Below are positions 14,226 to 61,819 of a stretch of 64,000 nt of DNA, in pieces (position 1 is the stretch's first letter; each line of letters begins with the position of its first letter). The stretch comes from Rhodosorus marinus CCMP1338 (Eukaryota > Plantae > Rhodophyta). Where the stretch lies: positions 1,178,001 to 1,242,000 of the forward strand of contig JAMWBK010000008.1 of assembly GCA_029953675.1 (NCBI GenBank), read 5' to 3'. A model generated the notes under the pieces. It had not been told where the DNA came from, searched no databases, and was given only the letters and a program-made list of their open reading frames with translations. The translations under genes and the position numbers were made by a program.

Positions 14226-14760
14226 ATGGGTCAAGAACCAGTTAGGTGAGTTGTTCGCTTTTTCTGGCGATCAATACGATGAGACCTTTGTGTTGCGGTT
14301 CTTCTGCTCGTCTTCTGTGAGTCTGACTGCCGCTGTTCTTTCTTTGTTCCCGTTTCAGATTGTATTCAAAGGGCGTAGTGATGGGATACAAGAGGGGAAT
14401 TAGATTGCAGTATCCCAAGCAAGTTCGCATCAAGGTTGAAGGCTTGGAGACTCGCTCCGACACAAAGTCCTATCTGGGCAAGAGAGTGGCTTATGTTTAT
14501 AAGGCATCCAACTCGAAGGGCGTGGGAAAGAAGGAGTCCAAATATCGAGTGATTTGGGGCAAGGTAAGGCGGCTCTATATTTTTGGTCATGATGAGCCGA
14601 GCAGGATGCCGTTGATTACTAATGCCGCGCTTGTGCTGTCTCGCAGATACTTGCGCCGCATGGAAACAATGGCGTGGTCAAGTCGAAGTTCGGAAGGAAT
14701 CTGCCGCCCACTGCAATTGGCGGATCTGTGCGAGTAATGCTCTACCCAAGCCGAATCTAA
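14226..14760 (+). CDS. RPL35A: 60S ribosomal protein L35a (eL33), 3 exons
   Basis: Exons 14226-14245, 14359-14563 and 14647-14760 give MGQEPVRLYSKGVVMGYKRG...YLGKRVAYVYKA...[26 protein letters not shown]...VRVMLYPSRI*. Confidence 0.98.
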
Positions 14761-15203
14761 GAGTAGTAGGTCTAGCTGGTGGGGTTTGCCGGGATTGCTC
14801 CTTGTGTACTTACTTAGCATGTCAAAGGCTCTTGTAGGAGAAGAGTTTGGCTGGGAGCAGTGAAGAGTAACCCTTGCTGGCGGAAACATATTGAAATTTC
14901 TTGGATCCTCAGGACTACGTTGGATTTGAAGAGTTCACGAGAAGTAATAAATCAGTGTATCGTTTTTTTCTTGTAACGACAAGAGGGACCTTTTTGCGCC
15001 TTTTCAGATGAGTATGTGAGGACGTTGGCCGCGCGAGTTCAGGTTCCTGTCCGGGCCTGCGGGAGATTTTCTGGAGCTTGATGGCCTAGCCAGCTAGCCT
15101 GGGAGTGGCCGCGCCGGGTTGTGACAGCGCTCAATTGGAGTGAAAAGATCTCAGGCCAGGAGCTACAGCCATCGCCAAAACTGCGGCAATCGATTGCAAT
15201 TTT

Positions 15204-17590
15204 TTACTTGTCTTCCTCCGCTGGCGAGCAACTTACTAGTTCAATATCGAACGCTAGCATAGCGTTTGGCGGGAGAAGCTCCCCGAACATTTCGGTCATG
15301 TCGTGGCTCGCAGATGGATGAACGTATAGTGTTCGCGATTCGCCAGTCTTCATTCCGACAATGCCTTCTGCAAGTGCGCTTGGTGCAGTCTCAAGGGGTA
15401 GCGAAAGCGGATGTACTGTTTCGCCTACGTGCAGAGAACAATACGCGAACTCTCTAGTCAGAATAACTTCACGACAAGCAGATCCCAGAAATCCTGAAAA
15501 GCCCCTGATCCATACCTGTGCGATCCGCCGCTGGGCAAGTGAAGAAGGTTCTTCCGTCAAGAAGTCGGCCTTCCAGAATCACCAGCACCTCACTTGCTGC
15601 TGTAGCAACGGCAGCCTCTTCGTCCTCAGGTGGCGGGTCGGCGCTCTCCCACACAATCTAGAGAAGCCGAGACAAAGTAAATCCGAAATGAGAACGATAG
15701 TCTTCCAGCAGCTGCAAAGGAGAAGCTGCCGTTGGAGGTCTTACCCTGCCCGGACTGAGAACGTTGATTTTTGGATCCTTCTCAGTTTCCTCGAAGAATC
15801 GATTCGCATCTTCAAGGTTGAACTCCGAAAGAAACTGAGCTGCGTACTACGCATTTCAAAGAAAGTAGAACAACGGCTAAGTGATTCTCGCAGTTCCCTT
15901 GGTGGGACCTTGGGGGGTGCCTCTAATGCGGATCGCTATAGTGACTGAAGCACTTACAGATTGCAGCGTTCTCATCTGGCGTTCAAACTCTTGAAGAGGC
16001 ATAGGGAACGGTTCTCCCTCACAAGCGTTCTTGAGACCTTCGACGACCAAGCTGGAGTCTAGGCCTAGCGCTGAGTTGATCAGTGACTGTCCAAGGGCGT
16101 GACCGTAGGCTTCAGACAACTTCTCGGGGTCAATGCCCTCCTCCGAGGCAATTCCGTCAGTCCTCTTCTTTGCATCCTCAGCCTGGCCAGAAGGGAAGGC
16201 ATCAGGTTACGAAGATGATTAATTATGACTACCTTCAGGTGCAGAAGCAAAGAGTTAAAATATGATTGTCAAAAATAAGCTTCTTCCTCACCTTAGCAAT
16301 TGCCTGCGGTGGGATGGCTCCATATGACATTGCGGCTGCAGGAAGTCCGCCAGCGGCAGCGGTATTTACCCCGGCACCAGCCCCGGCACTTGCTCCAGTA
16401 CTCTCTTCAGTCTTACTATCCACAGTAGCATAAGCAGGAATAGATCGGTCCTCTCCAGTCGAGGCTGCTTGAGCTGTGAAGTACTCCCGGGTCTGCTGCA
16501 TGTAGTTCTTCCATTTGTCGGGATCATCGACCATCTGCAAAAATCACCGAAGTACAATGGCCGTCTAGATTAGATAAAAGCACACCGTAGTCTACACAGC
16601 ACAGCCCTATTTGCCAAGCGAATATTTCCGCTTACAGCTGACATGTTCGGATCTGCTTCAATCATTCCTTTCAGGAACACGTTGTTCTTCAGAGACATCC
16701 GAACTTCCTCCATCTTGTCCGGATTGTTCAGGTAGTCCTGCATCTCTTTGGTGCTCCACAGGTTGGACACGATATTTGGCATCATCTGCATCATTTGCTC
16801 GAGCTGAGCTGGATTGTTACCCATACCACCCATGCCACCCATGCCTCCCATGCCTCCCATGCCAGCCATACCGCCCATGCCAGCCATACCGCCCATGCCA
16901 GCCAAACCGGCGGCACCAGCCCCTCCGGCACCTCCGGCAGCCCCGGCACCTCCAACTCCAGTTCCTGAGGTGGTGAGAGCTCAATGACGTTAAAACTCAT
17001 GCTTCTAGAGCTGGACTACAGAAAGAAGCTCTGGGTTAATGAAAAACCTTACCCATGAACTGCTTCATCAGCTCCTCAAGCCCGTTTCCACCAGCACCAG
17101 CACCCGCACCAGCACCAAGACCCGCAGCACCTGCTGCCATCGGAGGCGCAGCAGCGGGTTCCCTCGTAGTTGTAGTCTCGGGTGTGGGAGTAGGAGCCTT
17201 CGCCGCTGCTGATGCAGTGGTCGAGCTCTTGCCGACTTTCCGGACTACGTTGACAGTAACTCCATCCGTGAGCTTGAAATCCGAAAGCGGTTGACTCCCC
17301 TCCAGTACTTGCCCCTTGAAGAGCAATGTCTGTCTGTCGCTTGGGATTCCGGATACAGAGGCTATCTTTTCCTGCTCATAGATCCGAATGGAATGTAGGA
17401 TTAGCAACGACGCTGCCCTAAGAGACCTTGAGTCCTATACAACAAACTCTCAACATCCCAGCATATGCTCGTTGAGATATCACAATGATCGTGAAAATCT
17501 CACCTGAAATTCCTGGACTGGATCGGACGGGTCGCAGCTTAGATCGTACGCCTCTCCATTGAAGCACTTTACCCGCACGGACAACGTCAT
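15204..17590 (-). CDS. Fusion protein, about 555 aa: ubiquitin-like domain + Gly/Met-rich STI1-like region + Mip/FkpA-type FKBP (FKBP_N + FKBP_C); 8 exons
   Basis: Exons 17590-17504, 17371-17053, 16964-16636, 16534-16292, 16182-15958, 15846-15745, 15657-15516, 15424-15204 sum to 1668 nt with no internal stop, and all introns are GT-AG (87-132 bp). UBL: MTLSVRVKCFNG...GIPSDRQTLLFKGQVLE. STI1-like: NPAQLEQMM, NNPDKMEE, DPNM. FKBP: SEAYGHALG...VVEGL...EGRLLDG..F...EGIVGMKTGESRTLYVHP...LPPNAMLAFDIELV. Confidence 0.85.
16820..16905 (-). repeat. Coding tandem repeat (GMAGMG/GGM)n
   Basis: Repeated atggctggcatgggcggt and ggcatggga/ggt units encode MAGMGGMAGMGGMAGMGGMGGMGGMGGMG. Confidence 0.95.
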
Positions 17591-18877
17591 CGGATCAAAT
17601 TAGCACCACAGCGAAATTCTCCTTCTGATAATGATCTTGGCAAGAGCCTCTCTTGAGGACAAGTTCTACTGATCACAGATGCACTCCACTCGCAAACATG
17701 AGCGCCTGCGAGAGCGAAACAAAATCCAATCCATTTAGCGCCGTGCGACTCTGGCGATACCTTCATGGTATCGCGCTCACAGAATTATATGCAAATTGGA
17801 GTTTCGGTCGAAAACGCTCACAGACCCCACCCCAGAGCGAATTTCCTGCTGGCTTCGATTTCCCTTACCTACCACACCCTCGGATCCGGACTATCGCTGC
17901 TCCCTCGTAGCAAGCAACTCGAGCAAATCAAAGATCAACTCCACCCGCAGTTTTCTTCCAAATTCCTGCAGCACTAATCGGCTCAATCTCATCCAAGCAC
18001 TTCACTTCCCTCTCCACTCCACCAACTCCAATATCCCTCCTCGGAAGGCTTCCCCTTTTACAACAACCCTCCGATTCTAGCTTCCCTGGAAAAACACCAC
18101 GAGAACAGCACAATTCCCGAAATCACCCGAAAATCGTCATACTGCCAACCCCGGTCTTTTCTCGGCAACAAGGATGCCGTTCTTGCGTCGATTATACCCT
18201 TACGCGTGTACCTATAATTTTCAAAATATAATTTCGGTTTCATGCAAAAGTGTGGCTTTCCATTGTATAAAACGATGGAGATCCGGATTTCGACAGCGAG
18301 TGATTACCCCCCCTCCTGTCCCCAACAACATTCCCGTTCCCGTTTCGGCTCCAAAATACGCAGACATTTTCTCAGCTGTGGCGCGCTAGGTTCTCACTAG
18401 ACCAGAGCTTAAGAGTTCGTTGGGCGGAAACATCTTGCCCGTGTGGCAATATAGCATATGAAGGCAAAAAAAAGGTCATCAGCGGCTCTAAAATCTCAGA
18501 TTGAGCTGAAGGACCTGGTCAGGGTGTGCGACCCTGCCTGTTTGCAACCAGTTTTCGTTTCGAGGACCAAGGCAGTCCAGTGGAACAAGAAGGTTGTAGA
18601 AGTGCAGGCGGATTTTTAGTAGGACTAATTTGACTTTTCTATTTGGGCCTAAGTCAATTATTTTGCAAGCCCTGAGGTTCGTATGGCTTTGACGAGAAAA
18701 AGGCGTGTAGCCTCAGTTTCAGCTTAGTAGCCGAATCTTTGTTTTAGTTGGTTGGCTACAGTGGGTTTAGTATGTCGCAAGAGTTCGGGTTGTGACCACG
18801 GCAGCTGCATCAACGAGCAACCCGTGACTCTCCCAGCATTCAAGAACGCGCGCTTCCTGTCAGCACTTAACGCCAGC

Positions 18878-19664: not shown

Positions 19665-20555
19665 CTAACGCTCAACCTTCTCACGGAGCCGTGCTTCAAT
19701 TTGGCTCACAAATTCAAGATCGTCCTCAACGGTTTCAGCTAGATCGAGCAGTCCGCTGTCTTTGGCAAGTCTCCGCTTCTCGGCGTTTGCAAGCTCCCCG
19801 AGCACAAGATCCTGCTGCACCACGTTGGAGACGGCTTTTCTGAGGACAAGATCCAAGCGATGTGCTGGTGTCATGGAGTCTGCAATCCTGGAGATGCCTT
19901 GAAGGGGTGACATTGGGGCCGGGAGATATTTCAGTTCAAGGTCTCGCCATGATGAGTTTGCTTCCGCGAAGACGGTATTACGTTCCCAGAACTCATCGCC
20001 AGGAAGTTCGAATTTGGAGTAGATATCTCGCAACACGTCCGCGGGAATTGAAGACTGCCGGCGGTATATACATTCTTCCAGCTGGGGCATGGCCAGTACG
20101 ATAAAGCTCAGGTACGATTTGTTTTTGGCGGCCCTCGACGCAAAATATTTTCGCATGGAACGATAGACGTGATTGTCATCCAGCAAGACTACTCGAAGAG
20201 CCCCTCTATCCGGTGAGTTCTTGCGTCTTCCGTGATATGCTTTGATGCCTTGCCGAGGCAGATCTTCAAGGATCCGTAGCGCTGAGCTTCCCAAGCAGTG
20301 CGAAGACGAATCAAGCAGAACGTCAACGATCCTTTTGGCTTCCGATCGTGCACGCTTCCATGCCTCGGGTGAGAACGTTTCGCCGTGTTCAAGCTTGTCA
20401 ACCTCAATGTGCCACACCTCATCTCGTTCGCCCCACTGGGAAGGTGGAGTCTCAAGCGTTGACAAATCTTGACGCGATTGGCAAAGTCTTTCAGCCAGGC
20501 TTGTTTTCCCCGCGCCAGGTACTCCGCAAAGTACACATAGCCAGACTCTTCCCAT
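19665..20555 (-). CDS. PSTK: L-seryl-tRNA(Sec) kinase
   Basis: Intronless 296 aa. N-terminal Walker A LCGVPGAGKTS, then WKRAR, LLDDNHVYRSMR, KFELP..FWE and HRLDLVLRK, which are characteristic of PSTK. Confidence 0.83.
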   Translation of the reverse strand: MGRVWLCVLCGVPGAGKTSLAERLCQSRQDLSTLETPPSQWGERDEVWHIEVDKLEHGETFSPEAWKRARSEAKRIVDVLLDSSSHCLGSSALRILEDLPRQGIKAYHGRRKNSPDRGALRVVLLDDNHVYRSMRKYFASRAAKNKSYLSFIVLAMPQLEECIYRRQSSIPADVLRDIYSKFELPGDEFWERNTVFAEANSSWRDLELKYLPAPMSPLQGISRIADSMTPAHRLDLVLRKAVSNVVQQDLVLGELANAEKRRLAKDSGLLDLAETVEDDLEFVSQIEARLREKVER

Positions 20556-31220: not shown

Positions 31221-32628
31221 ATGTCCGGCGCAATTGAGCATGGCAGGAGCTCGAGGTTCAAGAGCAGGGGCTATTTGTCGGATGCAGCTGAGAATCGAAG
31301 GGCAAATCTTCTGAAAAGACAACAAGAGTCTCGACAGAACATCAGCGAAGCTCTCCGATGCCTACAGAAGCCACCACCCCCAGGTCGTCAACTGTCAAAG
31401 TTTCGACCTTGGAGGAGGCCACCGCTAAGCTCGCCGGAATGGATGAACTATCCTCCCACGCGTTTGGGCAGTGATTGGGCGGTAGCCGCCAAGTGTGAAG
31501 GCAAAAGATGCGTGGTAGTTGCCGCCCATGGCGCAACGACGATTCGAACGCGCTCGGGACGATATCCTCGCAAAGGAGGACCCTTCACGTCCTGCCTTCC
31601 CGGTGGCTTTGAAAGCAAGGGCGGAAAGGTTGGAACGACCGTCTTGGACTGCATTTTCGCTCCATCTGAGCCAAATGTTCTTCGCGCACTCGACGTTATG
31701 GTCTGGAACGACCACATGCTCTATGATTGTGACTTTCAGTTTCGCTATTTTTGGCTGCGCGGTCGCTTGGTCGAGATTGGCGCCGACCGCGACTGCCCCG
31801 TTAAATTCACTGCGGTGGAGTTCTCGACAGCGACCGACAAGGCCGTAGCTGAAGCCTACGAATACGCCAAATCGATGCCGAGAGCAGATGGACTTTTGTT
31901 TTATCATTGGCAGGTACATTATGTGCTGGGACCAACTCCGCTGATCCTCCAGTGGAAGGATGGGAATTGCTCAGAATATTTCTTGGAAGGTGGACAAGAG
32001 ACTGAAAGTCAAGGCTCTCCCTCAGACGAGATGCTGGATGTTCCGGACTTGTACACGGTGCTCCTCTGCGGCTCAGAAGGTATGCTGCTCACCTCTGACG
32101 TACCACCGGTCGTTGTGAGTCGTGCGGAGGCGTTGAGTACGGACGGCTCGCTAGTGGCGAGCGAAGGGGACCTGCTCAGGTTTCGGATCTTGAACCCGGC
32201 TCAATTGTGCAACGTTCGTGAATCAGAGGTACCAAACTATTGAGCGATACTTTGCAGAAGGGCGACATGATGCTTCGAACCTTACTCTCGTCATTCGGAT
32301 ACTGATATGCAGGTTTCTAGAGTGGCTCAGTTGAAAAGCGCGGGGAAGGCAAGCCTTGTGAGAACGCTGCCCGATAGCTGGAGCCGGGTATGCGTGACGT
32401 CCTCAGGCACTTTCACTCCGCGATGAGCATTTTCTTGACCAGCTTTCCACGCGTTGCTTTGTTTGAATATTTGTCTATATTTCTTGCGCTACAAGAAGTA
32501 GCTGAACTGAACGGTTTTTATCCGTGGCTCAGATCCTTTTCCAATGCCGCGGCCGCCACAATCCGCTCACAGTTGACGACGTGTTGGGGTCTATTCGAAG
32601 CGAAATCCGAGACCAAGTCATGGCGTAG
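31221..32628 (+). CDS. SNUPN: Snurportin-1 (m3G-cap snRNP import adaptor), 3 exons
   Basis: Exons 31221-32228, 32313-32387, 32533-32628. N-terminal IBB-like RR..LL.RQ..R, LSSPEWM, EGKRCVVVA, LPGG, TVLDCIF, DVMVW, FRYFWL, DGLLFYH..VHY..GPTPL.LQWKD and DSWSRILFQ. Confidence 0.92.
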
Positions 32629-35867: not shown

Positions 35868-36482
35868 TTAATAACCCGATAGCTTAGCAAGCGAAAAGGA
35901 ATCTACAATAGATCGAATTTGTGTTTCCTGTGCGGCGAAGTTTTCAGCATTAGACTGAGCTGTTAGGGTGACTATGTATTGTCCAGGACGTATTGTAAAA
36001 AGCGTTATTAAGTGTTTTTCCGGTTGATTCGGCGGCTTGATCTGGTAATCGAATATGTACGTGTCAGGTTTTGCTGTGACCTTATTCATCTTGCCCGTTA
36101 CTTCCTTCGGGAGGATTGTACTCGCAACATTGTCCACAGATCCAAACGACGTAAGCTTTTGGAAGTCACCCGGAATCGGCGTCGCGATTGCCGATACATT
36201 AACATCATCCTTCACGTAGAGGTAGAGCTTGCGTCCGCCACTTAAAACAGTGTTGTTTTCCTTGAAGGAGTCAGGAACAGTGAACTCATATCCAACAGTT
36301 TCGTCCGTTACCGTCTGTGCATACGTTGCTTTGGGCATTAGCAACACGGCAGGTGTCAGTGCGAGCGATCGAAGGAGCTCCCTTCTCGACAACGAACATT
36401 TAGTACTCGTCCCTCTTTCGAACGCTGGTTGCCCAGTCGCTGTCAGGCCCCTACAGCACGTGGTAACCACGAAGGCAGACAT
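35868..36482 (-). CDS. PsbP-domain thylakoid lumen protein (PPD-like)
   Basis: MSAFV transit peptide, Tat signal SRRELL + hydrophobic stretch + A-Y-A, then GYEFTVP, NVS...TP...DF.KLTSFG, Y.FDY and LY.LTAQ-type PsbP motifs. Confidence 0.9.
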   Translation of the reverse strand: MSAFVVTTCCRGLTATGQPAFERGTSTKCSLSRRELLRSLALTPAVLLMPKATYAQTVTDETVGYEFTVPDSFKENNTVLSGGRKLYLYVKDDVNVSAIATPIPGDFQKLTSFGSVDNVASTILPKEVTGKMNKVTAKPDTYIFDYQIKPPNQPEKHLITLFTIRPGQYIVTLTAQSNAENFAAQETQIRSIVDSFSLAKLSGY

Positions 36483-37889
36483 CGACACTAATTCGAACAC
36501 AAGAAAAATCCAATGTTTGTACTCGTCAACTTGTGCTTCCCAGCCTCAGCGACAAACCTGGAGCTGCATACGCTGGGACCGATGACCTCGGCGGTGTGTA
36601 TTGGAAAATTGTAACAATGCACCTCAGCGAGATTTTGCCTGTAAGCACTAGTACACTGGATAGTACAATTTCCTTACCATTGCCGAGTATGGTTTTTACA
36701 GCAAAATATATGATAGAAACATCCCATCGAAGCAAGAAAGAAACTAGCAACTACAGACCAATCAAACCCGGTTCTTATTCGAATTTCATATTGCCAAAAT
36801 ATTTACAAAGCAAATATTTGGCTCAGAGGCAGGCAACTGAGCCCTCAACTCGGGTTTGTGTGGGCTGGTTTCGGGAGCGTGTTCAAGTTACCTGGGCCTA
36901 GCACTCGCATAGATCAGTAAAATTTGCAGGCTTTTCCAGTTGAGTTTACAAGCGCTCAGTTGTCAGAAACTACGGAGATAGTCCCGGGAATGGGCCCTTA
37001 ATCATGCGAGCATGAAAGACGCGGGTTTCCTTTACTCCTGATACCCGTTGTTCGGTTTACTGGAAAAAGGATGATCCCGTCGGGTGTGTGGCAAGCGGCA
37101 GAGAGCCCGCTTTTGAAGGCGCGCATCGCTACGCCCATGAGACAATACAAGTTTCATTACACTCGAACGCATGGCTTGGTGCGGAGAAGGGGCCCGCCTA
37201 ATCGGAACAAAGCAGCATTGTATCATTATCGCAGATTGGACCCCGCTTTTTTGGGACAATTGCTCGTCCTTGGGTTAAACTTGTTTTCCGTTAAACCATA
37301 CTCCTCGTCTCGCGCACAGTGTATTTATTGGAATCTGTGTTTGCAATACGGTTTCTAGGGAGTCATTAGAATTTCGAATTTTATTTAAGGATACTGACAG
37401 GATTCTAGCCGAGCGAACCACGTTTTCTTTTTCTTTTTCCCAAGTTCGTGTAGTTTCGACAAGGTTCTCTCCAATACAACGTTCTTCTTTAGAATAGGTC
37501 CATTCAGTGCCTTGAAAGACTGCCCACAGAGGACCTCTTTTTCTTCTAGTGAATATTTTCTCACGAGGATTTGCGTTTTCTTGTCCAACAATTGTTAATT
37601 GATTGAAACCTTGATTCTTTTTTTGAGTTGGATTTGCGTCCGATAAGAAAACGTCCAATACCGTCCGATATAAGCTTACTAGACAGTACGCGTAATTGGT
37701 TTTTCTTCAGTTCGGGTCCGATATAAATTGATTGGACCTGATTTTGAAAGAAAAATCGCCGTTCATCCGACAACGGTAAGATAACGACCGATTGCCGTCC
37801 GATATTTCTCAATCAACGACTGCTTTTTATTGATTGGGTTTCAATCTTCCCGTTCGGGGACGTTGTGTCCGGGCTGGTCGTTTGCTCGC

Positions 37890-52189: not shown

Positions 52190-54832
52190 TTAGAGCCCGT
52201 TTGATTGAGAAGCACCGCTACCTCGCGCACTTGAAGCCGAGCCGGGCCATTTCTCCTGAAGAGTTCCTGCAGAACTCTGGATGGATTCGGCCCCTTCAGA
52301 CCTCTTCATGACGCTCCGATTTTCAGCTGGAGCAGCAAAGATCGTCGGGAGTAGGTCTTCATCGTTGGTAGTTTCTTCTTTCTGCGCCTTCGAGAGGTCA
52401 GTCTTTGAGCTCAATCTCTCTGCCGCAGCTTTCTTCATCACTTTCTTCTCTAAAGCCCCTTCCTTCCCAGAGGGAGCAAGTTTCTTCTTGATGTGGCTCT
52501 TCGTCCCAAGTGCTGCCGAGAACTTTTTCGTTTGGGGTTGCTTTCGCTTGTTGGGTTGCCCTTCAGTAGTAACATCAACGTTCCTGGGGACATCAATGCT
52601 TGCTCCTGCGGTCGGGGGAGACCCAACTTGTTCTTTCTTATCGCTGGAGTCCGACATTCCAGGGCCAGTGGTGGATTCACGAGCGTTGGAGGTCTTGCTC
52701 GATGTAGATCCGAATTTGAGCTTTTGCTGAACAAGCACTCCCTTACTAGCGAGGGCAGAAAAATCAACGTCCGCTAAGGGCTTGCAATTCGACCCATTCT
52801 TGTTCACCACAGCTTTTTCAGCCCCCACTCTCTCTCCACGCGCTTTGATCTTCTTTAAGGATAAGCTCGTCTTTGCAATTCTCTGAGCAACCTTCTTCAC
52901 CTTCTTTGGTGCCCCACCCAAACTTGCGTCCGTCTCTGTCGATTGACGCTCGATCCGTTCCGTAGTTTGCTTGCTCTTCTTCGAAGTGTCCGCGCCAGCT
53001 TGTGCTGTTCGCTTTCCAGCCTTCTTCACTTTCTTCTGGCCGTTTGAACCCGGTTTAATCTCGGGCTTGTGACGCTTTTTAGGCTGCACGCTGAGCTCCC
53101 CTGGCTCTTGCGCAACGCGTTTTAACTTCGAGCTCTGTGCAAGTGCAAAACTTGCAGCTTCACCAGGCCGCTCTCCAGAGTCCGTACCTGTGCCTTCAAT
53201 CCCGAGAACGGATGCTCCACGATTCTCTGTCAATGGCATCGTACGGGAGAGGGTTTGTCCAGTCTTCTCGGGTTTTTTCTTCTTATCCGCGACTTCCGGA
53301 GATGCAGAACCGGGTTGGAGCTTCTTTTTGACCTCTGCTCCTGTTTTATTCTTGTTGGTCTTCGCCTTATTGTCCCCGACCTTGACAATCATCTCCGACT
53401 TGCTTTTGACAATGGAAGCCTTCTGTAGCCCGTGTCCTTGTAGCGAGGTGCTAGCTTTGACTTTGGCCTTTTTGGCGATTGTCTTCTGTTGCCCAGCTTT
53501 CGCACTTTTGTCTTTTGGCTTCTTCGGCTTTGCAACCCCACAAACTTTCGGCGCAGAGTTCTCACTTTCAACAGCAATTGCGGTAGCACTTTGGCTACTA
53601 TATCCTTTGTCCTTTGTGGCGGTAAGCTGAGCAGCGGAGTTAGTCGCAGTGGATCCATGCGTGGCTTTGGCTTCTTCCTCCAATTTCCCCTTCTTGGGAG
53701 CTGATTTCTTCGGCTTCTCAGCAGCAAGCTTTGCTTTCTCCTGGGCCGCCAACAATCTCTGCGCCATTTTTTCCTTGTGCTTAGTTAGCTCTTCCTCTCT
53801 TTTTCGCTTTCTATCTTCCTTTTCAAGGTCTTTCTTTCTTTGCCTCTCAGCACAAACCACAGCCTCAACGCGACGCCAGGCTTCACCGAGCGCTTTCTCA
53901 TTCATTTTGAAGTCTCCGAAGCAGCGCTTCTTAAGTTCCGTCAGCCACGTCGGCATTTCTTTCGATGCCTTCTTCGGTCGCTGTGCAAGCTGATTTCTAT
54001 TGTACAGATGGTCAATCCGTGCGCTGAGAACATCGTGTATAAGGGTGTCCATGTGCTTGTCGAGCACAAGCTCCAATCTAGTCTCGGGGGTCTTGGATGA
54101 AGTGTTCTCTCCAGGTTCCTCCGGTTTCGCATCTGGCTCAGCAGGTGCTTGTTTCTTCAGATCCGCGACCGCATCGGAAAGCCTCTGCATAGCGGATTCT
54201 ATGTTTTCTGCAGAGATCTCCTTTTTGTCGGTCCAGTGCAGCGTAAACCCCAGCGACTCCAGGTTTAACCTCAAGCAGCGAAGCAAGGTGGAGAGCTCCT
54301 TCCACAGAGCATTGTCGAGAACAAGCCTTTTCTCGGATCCAGGTTTTCTTCCCTCCAACTTGGCAAGCTCGTTTGCACGTGCTGTCTTGAAGAGTCTTCG
54401 AAGTGCTCCTTGAACTTCTGGATCGTTCAGGTTAGGTTTCCTACTCCCGAACAGAGTTTCCACCTTTTCCTTAAGCGCCTGAACAGAAGCGGCTACTTCG
54501 TCCGGCAGGACTTTTCGCTCTGTGTTCGCTGCATCCGAAGAGCGATCCTTCTTCGTATACTCCGCAGGGGTTGGCTTCATTCGGGTTTTCGATGTTACCT
54601 TAGGCACGCTCTTGCCAGTTTTCAGTTCTCCTCTATTTATGTAGAAGCCCGTGTATTTGGTGGTGGGCACGTTCCTCTGGAATTCGTACAAAAGATCGTC
54701 ATCATCAATGAACATATCATCGTAGTCATACTCGTCCACTAATGTTCTCTTGGCCTGAGAAGAGTTCTTCCTCTCGCTCTCCCTTGAATTCTCAGCAGAC
54801 TGGAGTGACCTGTTGTCCTCATCCACCCGCAT
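52190..54832 (-). CDS. UBN: Ubinuclein/HPC2-like HIRA-complex subunit (HUN domain), intronless, Lys-rich
   Basis: EYDYDDMFIDDDDL...GFYINRGEL is the HUN/HRD motif near the N-terminus, followed by a coiled coil and a long basic low-complexity tail. Confidence 0.85.
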   Translation of the reverse strand: MRVDEDNRSLQSAENSRESERKNSSQAKRTLVDEYDYDDMFIDDDDLLYEFQRNVPTTKYTGFYINRGELKTGKSVPKVTSKTRMKPTPAEYTKKDRSSDAANTERKVLPDEVAASVQALKEKVETLFGSRKPNLNDPEVQGALRRLFKTARANELAKLEGRKPGSEKRLVLDNALWKELSTLLRCLRLNLESLGFTLHWTDKKEISAENIESAMQRLSDAVADLKKQAPAEPDAKPEEPGENTSSKTPETRLELVLDKHMDTLIHDVLSARIDHLYNRNQLAQRPKKASKEMPTWLTELKKRCFGDFKMNEKALGEAWRRVEAVVCAERQRKKDLEKEDRKRKREEELTKHKEKMAQRLLAAQEKAKLAAEKPKKSAPKKGKLEEEAKATHGSTATNSAAQLTATKDKGYSSQSATAIAVESENSAPKVCGVAKPKKPKDKSAKAGQQKTIAKKAKVKASTSLQGHGLQKASIVKSKSEMIVKVGDNKAKTNKNKTGAEVKKKLQPGSASPEVADKKKKPEKTGQTLSRTMPLTENRGASVLGIEGTGTDSGERPGEAASFALAQSSKLKRVAQEPGELSVQPKKRHKPEIKPGSNGQKKVKKAGKRTAQAGADTSKKSKQTTERIERQSTETDASLGGAPKKVKKVAQRIAKTSLSLKKIKARGERVGAEKAVVNKNGSNCKPLADVDFSALASKGVLVQQKLKFGSTSSKTSNARESTTGPGMSDSSDKKEQVGSPPTAGASIDVPRNVDVTTEGQPNKRKQPQTKKFSAALGTKSHIKKKLAPSGKEGALEKKVMKKAAAERLSSKTDLSKAQKEETTNDEDLLPTIFAAPAENRSVMKRSEGAESIQSSAGTLQEKWPGSASSARGSGASQSNGL

Positions 54833-56351: not shown

Positions 56352-57763
<1,412 letters not shown>

Positions 57764-59615: not shown

Positions 59616-60400
59616 TCTCTCCCGTCACAAATCAACCTGGGCAGTCAGTCCGAAGTAAACACTGGCTCATACTATAAGCCTGCCTTTCTCAGATTTTGTG
59701 CGCAAGTCCGTTTCACTTAAGCCCAGTATTCTGAAGCACATCCTGTCGAAAGAGCTTTCGCTGCTATGTGCGCATCCCCCAGACCTTCCCGTTGGGAAAT
59801 TCGGCTGAATAGCGTGGTGCGAGCGAGGTCCATCTGAATCTGATTTCACCTCGATCTTTCTTTTGAAGATGGTGTTCGTGCTTTCATGAAGCGCATAGCT
59901 TATGCGGTTCCCCAGGCTAACGTATAGCATAAGTTTTCGTTTAAAACGGCACGAACCTAATGCTAAGAATGCCGTGTAGACCTCACGAAACAATCATTCC
60001 AATCATTGGCAGGTAAATTTTTAGCTCAAGCCGTATCCCCGAAACCACACGAGATGTGCGCATTTGACGAAGCCCTCTCGTATCCGTCCATACCAAGCCC
60101 AGGGCTGGTGGCAGAAGGGACAGGGAGACGCGTGTCTGATCCGAAAGCCGAGGTCGTGGAGCGAATATTTAATTGCCATTGACCTTCTCGGACGGACGGC
60201 TGCCTAAGGCTCTCACCGCGATGGCGCAGTGCGCACCTGGCTAGAGATTGATTATAGGAGGATATCACGTAGGACGGGTTATTGGATATGAGGAACCCGG
60301 AAAGACGCTTGAAAGCGAAGAGGTAGATTGGAGTTTGGTCGTTTCGATAGCGCACGACGTACTTAGGGTTGTGCTTACAGTGTCTTTGTTGCAGAGAAAC

Positions 60401-61819
60401 ATGAGACAGCCCAGAATTCTGCGAGTGACGAAGCATGGGGCAAGCACTGGTTGGCTCGAGGTGCAAACGGCATTTCAGAGAGCCGAGTTCATTGCGTTGG
60501 ACACAGAGTTCACGGGTTTGCCGGTTTCCGACAAAAGGATAAGGGCCGAAGACATGGAAGAGCGTTACGCAGGTATAAGGGAGTCGATCATGTCTAGAGC
60601 GATCTTACAGCTCGGAGTTTCAATTTTTATGAGGTCGGATCCTGTTGAGGACGTTGGTGCCAACTCGATGTGTCTGACCGTTAGGACTTTCGAGTTTCTT
60701 CTTTGCCGTGAAGGGGATTTCACAATCTCATCTGCAGCTGGGGAGTTTTTGGCGGACCATGGCTTTGATTTCAACTCAATGTTTCAATCGGGGATTCCTT
60801 ATACGCCAGTCTCCATGAGAACGGACTCTGGTCCAAAGAGAAGCGGCACAGCCTCGTCCATCTCCAGTACAAAACGAAAGCCTGCGGCTACGAATAGGCC
60901 CTCCAACGAGCCCACTAGAAAGAAGAGGAAACATCGAGAGTCAGAACGCACCAATCCCGCCGGGCAAGTTAATTCATGGCGACCTCTTCCAGCAGGATTT
61001 CTGCTTAGACTTGGATTGTTGGGGGTTCCGATCGTCGTTCACAACGGGCTCTACGACTTGCTCTTCCTGTACGACGCGTTTGAGGACTCTCTGCCGGAAA
61101 GCCTCCAGTCCTTCATAAGAGCCATTTCTTCGCTGGTTCCATCGCTTTATGATACAAAAGTACTCGCAGAGAGTGTTCTTGGACAGAAGATGTCCAATCT
61201 TGCATATCTCTTCGCGAAATGCATAAGACGTCAGGAAACAATGGACACAACTATCTTTACTCGCGATAGAGGCGGAGTACTTGAATGTAATGAAGCACGT
61301 TTACCTTTTGATCCTGCCGTCCTCTATCAGGAGAAAGAAGCTCAAACTGAGAAAGGAGGGGGTGGCGTCAAGGAGGGAAGGCCTACTCTCTGTCCCCGGT
61401 TTCTAAAGCGCGGACTCTGCGGCAAAGGTTGTTGTAGGTTTTCACATGACGTGGAGATGCTTGTTGACATTGAACTTGCAAGACAGAAATGTTCTACTAT
61501 GCAAGAGGTGGTCGAAAACAAAGCGCATGGATCAAGGGATTCAGGACAAGGGGTTGCTCGTACTAGTGATGTTAATATGTCAGACCGACTTTTGCGCGTG
61601 GACGGCAGGGAGGCAACTGAACTAGCAAAAACTCAACTTCCTCCTACTGGTGGGGCACATGCGGCTGGATATGATGCCTTTTGCACCGGCTTTGTGTTTG
61701 CAAGCATTCGCGCAATGTCGAATGCCCCAGAGATTGAGCTACACAGGAACCAGATATTTATTTCGGGCAAAAATAGGCCTCTATTGCTTCAGCCAAGCCG
61801 GTTCGTGGACTTGACCTGA
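60401..61819 (+). CDS. TOE1: CAF1-family deadenylase with a CCCH zinc finger (TOE1/Caf1z-like), intronless
   Basis: FIALDTEFTGL, VVHNGLYDLLFLY, YDTK, CPRFLKRGLCGKGCCRFSHD (C3H1) and HAAGYDAFCTG (DEDD motifs). Confidence 0.88.
   Translation: MRQPRILRVTKHGASTGWLEVQTAFQRAEFIALDTEFTGLPVSDKRIRAEDMEERYAGIRESIMSRAILQLGVSIFMRSDPVEDVGANSMCLTVRTFEFLLCREGDFTISSAAGEFLADHGFDFNSMFQSGIPYTPVSMRTDSGPKRSGTASSISSTKRKPAATNRPSNEPTRKKRKHRESERTNPAGQVNSWRPLPAGFLLRLGLLGVPIVVHNGLYDLLFLYDAFEDSLPESLQSFIRAISSLVPSLYDTKVLAESVLGQKMSNLAYLFAKCIRRQETMDTTIFTRDRGGVLECNEARLPFDPAVLYQEKEAQTEKGGGGVKEGRPTLCPRFLKRGLCGKGCCRFSHDVEMLVDIELARQKCSTMQEVVENKAHGSRDSGQGVARTSDVNMSDRLLRVDGREATELAKTQLPPTGGAHAAGYDAFCTGFVFASIRAMSNAPEIELHRNQIFISGKNRPLLLQPSRFVDLT

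Follow-up and report, generated by a model that had tools for sequence, protein, structure and literature searches.

A conserved red-algal fusion of a UBL-STI1 module with a Mip/FkpA-type FKBP and its member gene in Rhodosorus marinus

The red alga Rhodosorus marinus CCMP1338 carries a minus-strand gene whose predicted product joins a ubiquilin-like N-terminal half, composed of a UBL domain and an STI1-like region, to a C-terminal FKBP of the bacterial Mip/FkpA type. The gene lies in a 64,000-nucleotide stretch of contig JAMWBK010000008.1 (positions 1,178,001 to 1,242,000 of the forward strand), which is called the window here. The encoded protein is a member of an unnamed UBL-STI1-FKBP family of red algae, as demonstrated by the alignments, the positions of its motifs, and an E value of 7e-128 to the best match. 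The anatomy of the 555 amino acid fusion and its reading as a single gene are held with high confidence. The overall explanation, that one nuclear gene encodes a red-algal UBL-STI1-FKBP chimera working as a ubiquitin-independent holdase or triage adaptor, is considered reasonably likely.

The minus strand was read across positions 14800-18000 of the window, and the proposed exons were spliced and translated. A preliminary description of this stretch had proposed eight exons with a total of 1668 nt and an unbroken open reading frame (ORF) of about 555 amino acids, and splicing and translation reproduced this model (Table 1). The seven introns measure 132, 88, 101, 109, 111, 87, and 91 nt in order, and all of them have GT..AG boundaries. 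The homologues begin at the same point as the ATG of the window gene, and the CFNG motif is located near residue 8 in 34 of the 41 sequences. About 40 homologues can be aligned with the spliced product over its entire length (E down to 7e-128), which excludes chance.

A homologue search with the spliced product across 5.8 billion proteins retrieved 41 proteins at E values of 1e-97 to 7e-128, with 39-48% identity over the full length. The precomputed Pfam lists of these matches combine ubiquitin, UBQLN1, FKBP_N, and FKBP_C, and each of the 14 aligned members has all four matches. CFNG in the UBL domain and YGHALG in FKBP_N occur together in 40 of the 41 homologues, spaced by approximately 280-350 residues. 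The named members are red algae without exception and include Gracilariopsis chorda, Gracilaria domingensis, G. changii, Agarophyton chilense, and Eucheuma denticulatum, together with Porphyridium purpureum, Timspurckia, and Erythrolobus. An exhaustive profile search added Galdieria sulphuraria (XP_005705635 / M2WYH7). Complete ORFs with the full architecture were found in the transcriptome assemblies of Gracilaria changii, Eucheuma denticulatum, Agarophyton, Timspurckia, and Erythrolobus, which indicates that fused mRNAs exist in these relatives. Single uninterrupted genomic ORFs of 1545 and 1686 nt encode the fusion in Gracilariopsis chorda (NBIV01000088.1) and a Logan contig, respectively. 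The preliminary description had argued for one fused gene where the reading frames resemble two genes, and had suggested looking for the same fusion in other red algae; about 40 homologues fused end to end and the single genomic ORFs of the relatives bear this out. Because the fusion is shared across the named red algae, from Cyanidiophyceae to Florideophyceae, and is unbroken at the junction, it can be regarded as ancient and conserved. It has probably been retained for a billion years or more, a figure that is our own estimate.

The window protein has the same order of four domains as its red-algal orthologues and the same family-invariant motifs, which are, in order, CFNG, YGHALGQS, RLLDGRxFFTCPAAD, and LPPNA. 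In contrast, the window gene is divergent and rich in introns, with seven compared with none in Gracilariopsis and one in Galdieria. The single short intron of the Galdieria fusion gene is inside the UBL domain; an intron position common to Galdieria and the window gene was ruled out, as the two positions are four codons apart. In florideophyte members (P0002, P0015, P0023, P0034, and others), the C-terminus carries a conserved acidic-aromatic tail, APEEE..VGE[AS]Y[YF]..., which may be a short docking motif. The window protein, which ends in SPAEEDK, and the unicellular lineages are without this tail. A PP2A-A-like HEAT-repeat gene lies downstream of the fusion in Gracilariopsis chorda and in the related Logan contig (L001:7364-7686 and L002:5177-7240). 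This neighbour represents a conserved local gene order that was not found in the window.

The point at which the two halves meet was examined in the sequence of intron 4. According to the preliminary description, a phase-0 intron of 109 bp joins ...PQAIAK to AEDAKKRTDG in frame, and this statement about the sequence is correct. Intron 4 falls in a variable linker (amino acids 273-340), through which every homologue reads unbroken in the alignment. A TAA at 16209-16207 lies within the intron in the frame of exon 5, and the acceptor is forced, since no AG other than 16184-16183 is present between this TAA and exon 5. Translation of exon 4 through the donor site gives ...AIAKVRKKLIFDNHILTLCFCT followed by a stop. 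The FKBP half has no start of its own, as had been noted earlier: besides the in-frame TAA, the first in-frame methionine is M387, inside FKBP_N. An alternative donor, GGG|GTAAAT, located 78 nt upstream, was rejected as less parsimonious because the intron would then be 187 nt long, outside the local range of 87-132 nt.

The N-terminal half has the composition of a ubiquilin as far as the first STI1 domain. In the UBL, the positions of the hydrophobic patch are conserved across the family: phenylalanine stands at L8 and leucine at I44 in 40 of 40 members, and V70 is kept in 38 of 40. The UBL has no GG tail and is of the non-conjugatable kind found in the ubiquilin/Dsk2 family. It is followed by a Gly/Ala/Met-rich linker; a comparable Gly/Met-rich stretch separates the UBL from the first STI1 in canonical ubiquilins. 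Short amphipathic motifs resembling PDLSALL recur in the linker of many members. The helical STI1-like region that comes next was defined with Pfam (PF23195), hhalign, and an AlphaFold2 model of six helices with a predicted local distance difference test (pLDDT) score of 80.8. PF23195 matches 14 of 14 aligned family members, the best at 5e-9, and hhalign aligned the family STI1 profile to residues 172-245 (STI1-I) of a canonical UBL-STI1-UBA ubiquilin with a probability of 96.7% and an E value of 4e-10. A single STI1 region is present. No Pfam UBA match was detected in the window protein even at E<=1, and none of the 41 family matches lists UBA (PF00627) among its precomputed domains. The earlier view of the N-terminal half as ubiquilin-like and devoid of a UBA is thus upheld. 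In terms of ubiquilin/Dsk2 membership, the protein has the UBL and the STI1 of that family and is without its C-terminal UBA.

The C-terminal half is of the Mip/FkpA type, on which Pfam, the PDB sequence search, and the fold search agree, as the preliminary description had proposed. Its sequence aligns over the full length with PaFkbA (7dek), Legionella Mip (1fd9), and E. coli FkpA (1q6u). The AlphaFold2 model of this half (pLDDT 81.6) consists of helices 6-24 and 30-41, a long helix 50-83, and then the FKBP sheet, and the best Foldseek matches in the PDB are full-length LpMIP, FkpA, and PaFkbA, with E values of 5e-14 to 1e-12 over approximately 215 columns. FKBP_N, a long helix, and FKBP_C are thus present in one chain, as in Mip/FkpA proteins. 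The canonical FK506/proline pocket is absent, and the module is not part of a secreted, periplasmic, or surface protein, since it starts at about residue 340 of a protein that begins with a UBL.

The pocket was mapped onto human FKBP12 in two ways, by a MAFFT alignment with 42 members and by hhalign. Six positions are replaced in 42 of 42 members: Y26 by V or L, F46 by L, V55 by A, I56 by P, W59 by L, and Y82 by E or D in the red-algal orthologues and by H in the window protein. H87 is M in the family, F36 and F99 are kept, and six residues are inserted after F36 (FFTCPAAD). These replacements are themselves invariant across the family, and the mean pairwise identity is 74% for FKBP_C, 67% for FKBP_N, 56% for UBL and STI1, and 31-34% for the linkers. 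This pattern suggests a constrained, remodelled binding surface and resembles neither a domain in decay nor a standard isomerase. Since most of the aromatic residues of the pocket (Y26, F46, W59, and Y82) are substituted family-wide, a binding or holdase role is likelier than catalysis, and the FKBP domain is probably a non-catalytic binding module. The strong conservation of the FKBP_N motifs is compatible with homodimerisation and does not prove it. Of the FKBP chaperone that had been proposed for this half, the Mip/FkpA fold therefore stands; the pocket is degenerate in every member, and the module is probably non-catalytic.

Comparison with known systems shows what was kept and what was exchanged. 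Like ubiquilin/Dsk2, the fusion has an integral N-terminal UBL with a patch of the L8/I44/V70 type, a Gly/Met-rich segment after it, and an STI1 homologous to the ubiquilin STI1-I. Unlike ubiquilin/Dsk2, it has no UBA, second STI1, or PXX region, and its C-terminal 230 residues form a Mip/FkpA module in place of STI1-II and UBA. The FKBP_N helices, the long connecting helix, and FKBP_C are shared with bacterial Mip/FkpA/FkbA and with TcMIP. In contrast to the bacterial proteins, the module lacks a signal peptide and is embedded in a eukaryotic protein without a targeting peptide; its aromatic pocket residues are exchanged for others, and six residues are inserted after F36. Adaptors of the BAG1/BAG6 type combine a UBL with a chaperone-related module and link clients to the proteasome without a ubiquitin-binding domain. 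The likeness to them is a functional analogy only; the fusion has no BAG domain and is not known to be related to these adaptors in sequence.

These features allow a mechanism to be proposed. The protein is probably cytosolic or nuclear because its sequence leaves no space for a signal or transit peptide. The UBLs of ubiquilins bind to receptors on the proteasome, Mip/FkpA proteins dimerise via FKBP_N, and the chaperone activity of FkpA is independent of its isomerase activity. In ubiquilins, the hydrophobic groove of STI1 accommodates transmembrane segments as well as internal placeholder helices, and substrates are bound more tightly by STI1-I; like the fusion, yeast Dsk2 has just one STI1 (PMC13083928, PMC13083955). 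In the proposed mechanism, the UBL would dock on UBL receptors, for example those of the proteasome, and the STI1 groove and the Met-rich linker would hold exposed hydrophobic or transmembrane segments, with the PDLSALL-like motifs of the linker perhaps serving as placeholder helices. The Mip-like half would provide dimerisation and a second, non-catalytic surface for clients or partners, which would replace the recognition of ubiquitin. The whole protein would then work as a ubiquitin-independent holdase or triage adaptor. Its specific role as a proteasome shuttle, which we infer, is a tentative proposal to which we give somewhat less than an even chance.

Several observations weigh against the single-gene reading and the function built on it. 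In the window protein itself, the PF23195 match (residues 208-262, E 0.0069) does not reach the curated cut-off. A fold search of the PDB with the STI1 model gave nothing significant, the best match being the Ddi2 helical domain at E 3.6; likewise, a PDB sequence search with the STI1 profile returned just weak, non-significant matches to IL-6 and the Ddi1 helical domain. The equivalent of D37 in the pocket is ambiguous between the MAFFT and hhalign alignments. Dimerisation, ubiquitin independence, binding to the proteasome and to clients, the nature of these clients, and loss of peptidyl-prolyl isomerase activity are all putative, as is the hand-off to the proteasome or Cdc48 put forward in the preliminary description, and the joining of exons 4 and 5 in this organism is a predicted splice. 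A 235 amino acid MMETSP ORF labelled complete (P0062), found by searching with the C-terminal half, bears on this splice. Its residues 7-235 are identical to window residues 327-555 at 225 of 229 positions (98%), with four substitutions, and at introns 5, 6, and 7 it is joined exactly as the gene model predicts, which makes it independent transcript support for these three splices. Its first six residues, MPPCGQ, are the translated 3' end of intron 4, so its transcript either retained intron 4 or began within it. No ORF for the N-terminal half was found for the organism of P0062 in the collection by the homologue search or with the STI1 region alone. Both facts would suit two separate products, namely a UBL-STI1 protein that ends by reading through into intron 4 and a Mip-like FKBP whose transcript starts in or near this intron, with the fusion minor or absent. 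In the window, however, the intronic ATG (16202-16200) lies 20 nt from exon 5 and hence out of frame, and just a 40-codon unrelated ORF can be read from it; with no in-frame methionine before M387, a complete stand-alone FKBP cannot be translated from the window. A 2-nt indel in the 3' end of intron 4 (window 16183-16215) separates the window from P0062 and puts the intronic ATG in frame with the FKBP exons in the MMETSP organism. Such an indel between near-identical strains is expected of non-coding sequence, whereas a functional start codon would be conserved; it is probably neutral intron variation and could be raw material for gene fission. Intron 4 also has canonical sites, phase 0, and a length in the local range, and the approximately 40 orthologues across the whole depth of the red algae are all fused, including those with single-exon genomic ORFs. 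Short-read transcript assemblies often contain retained introns and breaks at GC-rich repeats, and P0062 is read as an incompletely spliced or broken assembly product. The preliminary description had named a separate FKBP transcript as the finding that would count against the fusion; introns 5-7 of P0062 are spliced as modelled, but the intron 4 sequence before exon 5 means that this check was not cleanly passed. Taken together, the reading as two products is considered highly improbable, and one fused gene is preferred.

Two further alternatives accept the fusion and differ on its function. The FKBP half could be an active, FK506-sensitive peptidyl-prolyl isomerase, which would make the protein a foldase recruited by its UBL and STI1. 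FKBP_C is above the Pfam cut-off and strongly constrained, F36, F99, and the overall fold are retained, and some FKBPs tolerate Leu or Phe at W59. However, Y26, F46, W59, Y82, V55, and I56 are replaced in every member, six residues are inserted after F36, and the inactive FK3-type domain of wheat FKBP73 is among the best PDB sequence matches of this half. An active isomerase is therefore judged improbable. The chief competing function is that of a scaffold of the chaperone or co-chaperone kind without delivery to the proteasome, such as an organelle-precursor holdase, an Hsp70-linked factor, or a condensate scaffold, in which the UBL would serve self-association or another UBL receptor. The chaperone activity of FkpA is independent of degradation machinery, and the amphipathic linker motifs recur in many members. 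In addition to binding internal placeholder helices, ubiquilin STI1 domains promote phase separation and self-association (PMC13083928, PMC13083955). On the other side, the hydrophobic patch for UBL receptors is conserved in 38-40 of 40 members, as in shuttle factors, and this is the one result that discriminates between the two. The scaffold is considered unlikely, and the ubiquitin-independent holdase or triage adaptor remains the preferred explanation.

The relatives of the FKBP module were traced with an exhaustive profile search of 1.84 billion representatives with the FKBP half. The top tier, above 250 bits, contains about 10 clusters, all of the fused family. A second tier at 140-180 bits is a small set without a UBL, and a third at 80-140 bits consists of a continuous series of Mip-like proteins that stand alone and have signal peptides. 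The second tier includes a 395 amino acid protein of Pyropia vietnamensis (GAB0498473, about 31% identical), which has FKBP_N and a pseudo-FKBP_C. No UBL or STI1 coding sequence was found by tblastn within 6 kb upstream of its gene, and this Bangiales protein is either a UBL-less paralogue or the result of a lineage loss of the N-terminal half. The second-tier proteins P0080, P0082, and P0083 (367-430 amino acids) combine an N-terminal extension with two FKBP_N-like repeats and the pseudo-pocket motifs of the family (RLLDGR.., HP..G...LF), which indicates that a degenerate Mip-like module also exists outside the UBL fusion.

The highest-scoring stand-alone relatives (P0084-P0106) are Mip-like proteins of Chlamydiota. 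A GTDB scan with the red-algal FKBP profile, whose patterns are family-specific, found no prokaryotic relative. The same scan with the bacterial matches gave loci L004-L083 at 45-76% identity, and almost all of these loci, to which three of the matches used in the scan are identical, belong to Parachlamydiaceae, Waddliaceae, Simkania, and other chlamydial metagenome-assembled genomes. The Chlamydiota proteins keep Y26 and Y82, which are lost in the red-algal family. The Mip-like module may have a chlamydial origin; this is a lead from similarity ranking rather than phylogeny. The full-text literature search returned no description of a chlamydial Mip transfer, and OG0001938, a peptidyl-prolyl isomerase that PMC6629376 lists among the horizontal-transfer candidates of Cyanidiales, could not be linked to the fusion gene. 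It can also be hypothesized that the fusion is the red-algal replacement of canonical ubiquilin, formed in the red-algal ancestor from a bacterial, possibly chlamydial, Mip-type chaperone and the UBL-STI1 half of ubiquilin, with later loss of the isomerase activity, although this is considered rather unlikely. If it were true, a dimeric, ubiquitin-independent holdase that delivers hydrophobic or unfolded clients to the proteasome would represent a triage route undescribed in other eukaryotes.

The preliminary description did not recall this architecture as described. A full-text literature search found no paper on the fusion, nor on ubiquilin/Dsk2 in red algae, and an article on algal ubiquitin fusions (PMC6332867) does not mention FKBP. 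The family itself is already in the NCBI and UniProt databases under automatic names, namely 'Peptidyl-prolyl cis-trans isomerase Mip' in Gracilariopsis chorda and Porphyridium purpureum and 'Ubiquitin' in Gracilaria domingensis. It is therefore real and conserved and appears unstudied, rather than categorically new. Both names are misleading, and the family deserves a name of its own.

Shuttle factors such as ubiquilin are defined by the reading of ubiquitin through the UBA. In the red algae, a whole eukaryotic lineage keeps a version in which a bacterial-type chaperone module, its pocket remodelled, stands in place of the UBA. If the proposed mechanism is true, the family would be a natural example of chaperone-coupled, ubiquitin-independent delivery and a clean model of the STI1-I region acting alone. 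It would also show a bacterial-type periplasmic chaperone fold recruited to eukaryotic cytosolic proteostasis.

Table 1. Coordinates of the fusion gene and its parts in the window, with the locus of the Pyropia relative
Feature	Position	Strand	Remarks
Whole coding region	15204..17590	-	8 exons, 7 GT..AG introns; 1668-nt ORF, 555 aa; stop TAA 15206-15204
Exon 1 (aa 1-29)	17590-17504	-	ATG 17590-17588; UBL begins here
Intron 1	17503-17372	-	Splits the UBL domain
Exon 2	17371-17053	-	Splicing and translation
Intron 2	17052-16965	-	Splits the Gly/Ala/Met-rich linker
Exon 3	16964-16636	-	Splicing and translation
Intron 3	16635-16535	-	Splits the STI1-like region
Exon 4	16534-16292	-	Splicing and translation
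Intron 4 (junction)	16183..16291	-	109 nt, phase 0, GTGAGG...CCAG; joins ...PQAIAK to AEDAKKRTDG
Exon 5	16182-15958	-	Splicing and translation
Intron 5	15957-15847	-	Splits FKBP_N
Exon 6	15846-15745	-	Splicing and translation
Exon 7	15657-15516	-	Splicing and translation
Intron 7	15515-15425	-	Splits FKBP_C
Exon 8	15424-15204	-	Splicing and translation
UBL (aa 5-74)	17237..17578	-	Pfam ubiquitin, 1.5e-15
Gly/Ala/Met-rich linker (aa 77-185)	16816..17230	-	G 33%, A 24%, M 11%
STI1-like/UBQLN1 helical region (aa 186-272)	16454..16815	-	Pfam PF23195, hhalign, AlphaFold2 model
FKBP_N (aa 346-434)	15748..16125	-	Pfam, 2.2e-7; invariant YGHALGQS motif
FKBP_C (aa 453-546)	15234..15606	-	Pfam, 1.1e-9; degenerate pocket, 6-residue insertion (FFTCPAAD)
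Pyropia vietnamensis GAB0498473	L084:6001-7188		BAAFKR010000060.1

The long ORFs and exons around the fusion gene are those of ordinary nuclear genes of a photosynthetic eukaryote; an Rfam scan of the window for RNA genes gave no match. Pfam matches on the minus strand are KTI12/AAA at 19665-20555, PsbP at 35868-36500, the HUN (ubinuclein/HPC2) domain at 52190-54832, and the HPPD N-terminal domain at 57161-57763. On the plus strand, a snurportin-1 cap-binding domain was matched at 31221-32243 and a CAF1-family ribonuclease at 60248-61819. Another neighbour is a ribosomal protein L35Ae gene, the first exon of which lies at 14360-14737 on the plus strand (Pfam 5.9e-20). It converges tail to tail with the fusion gene, leaving approximately 300-450 nt for the 3' untranslated regions of both genes.

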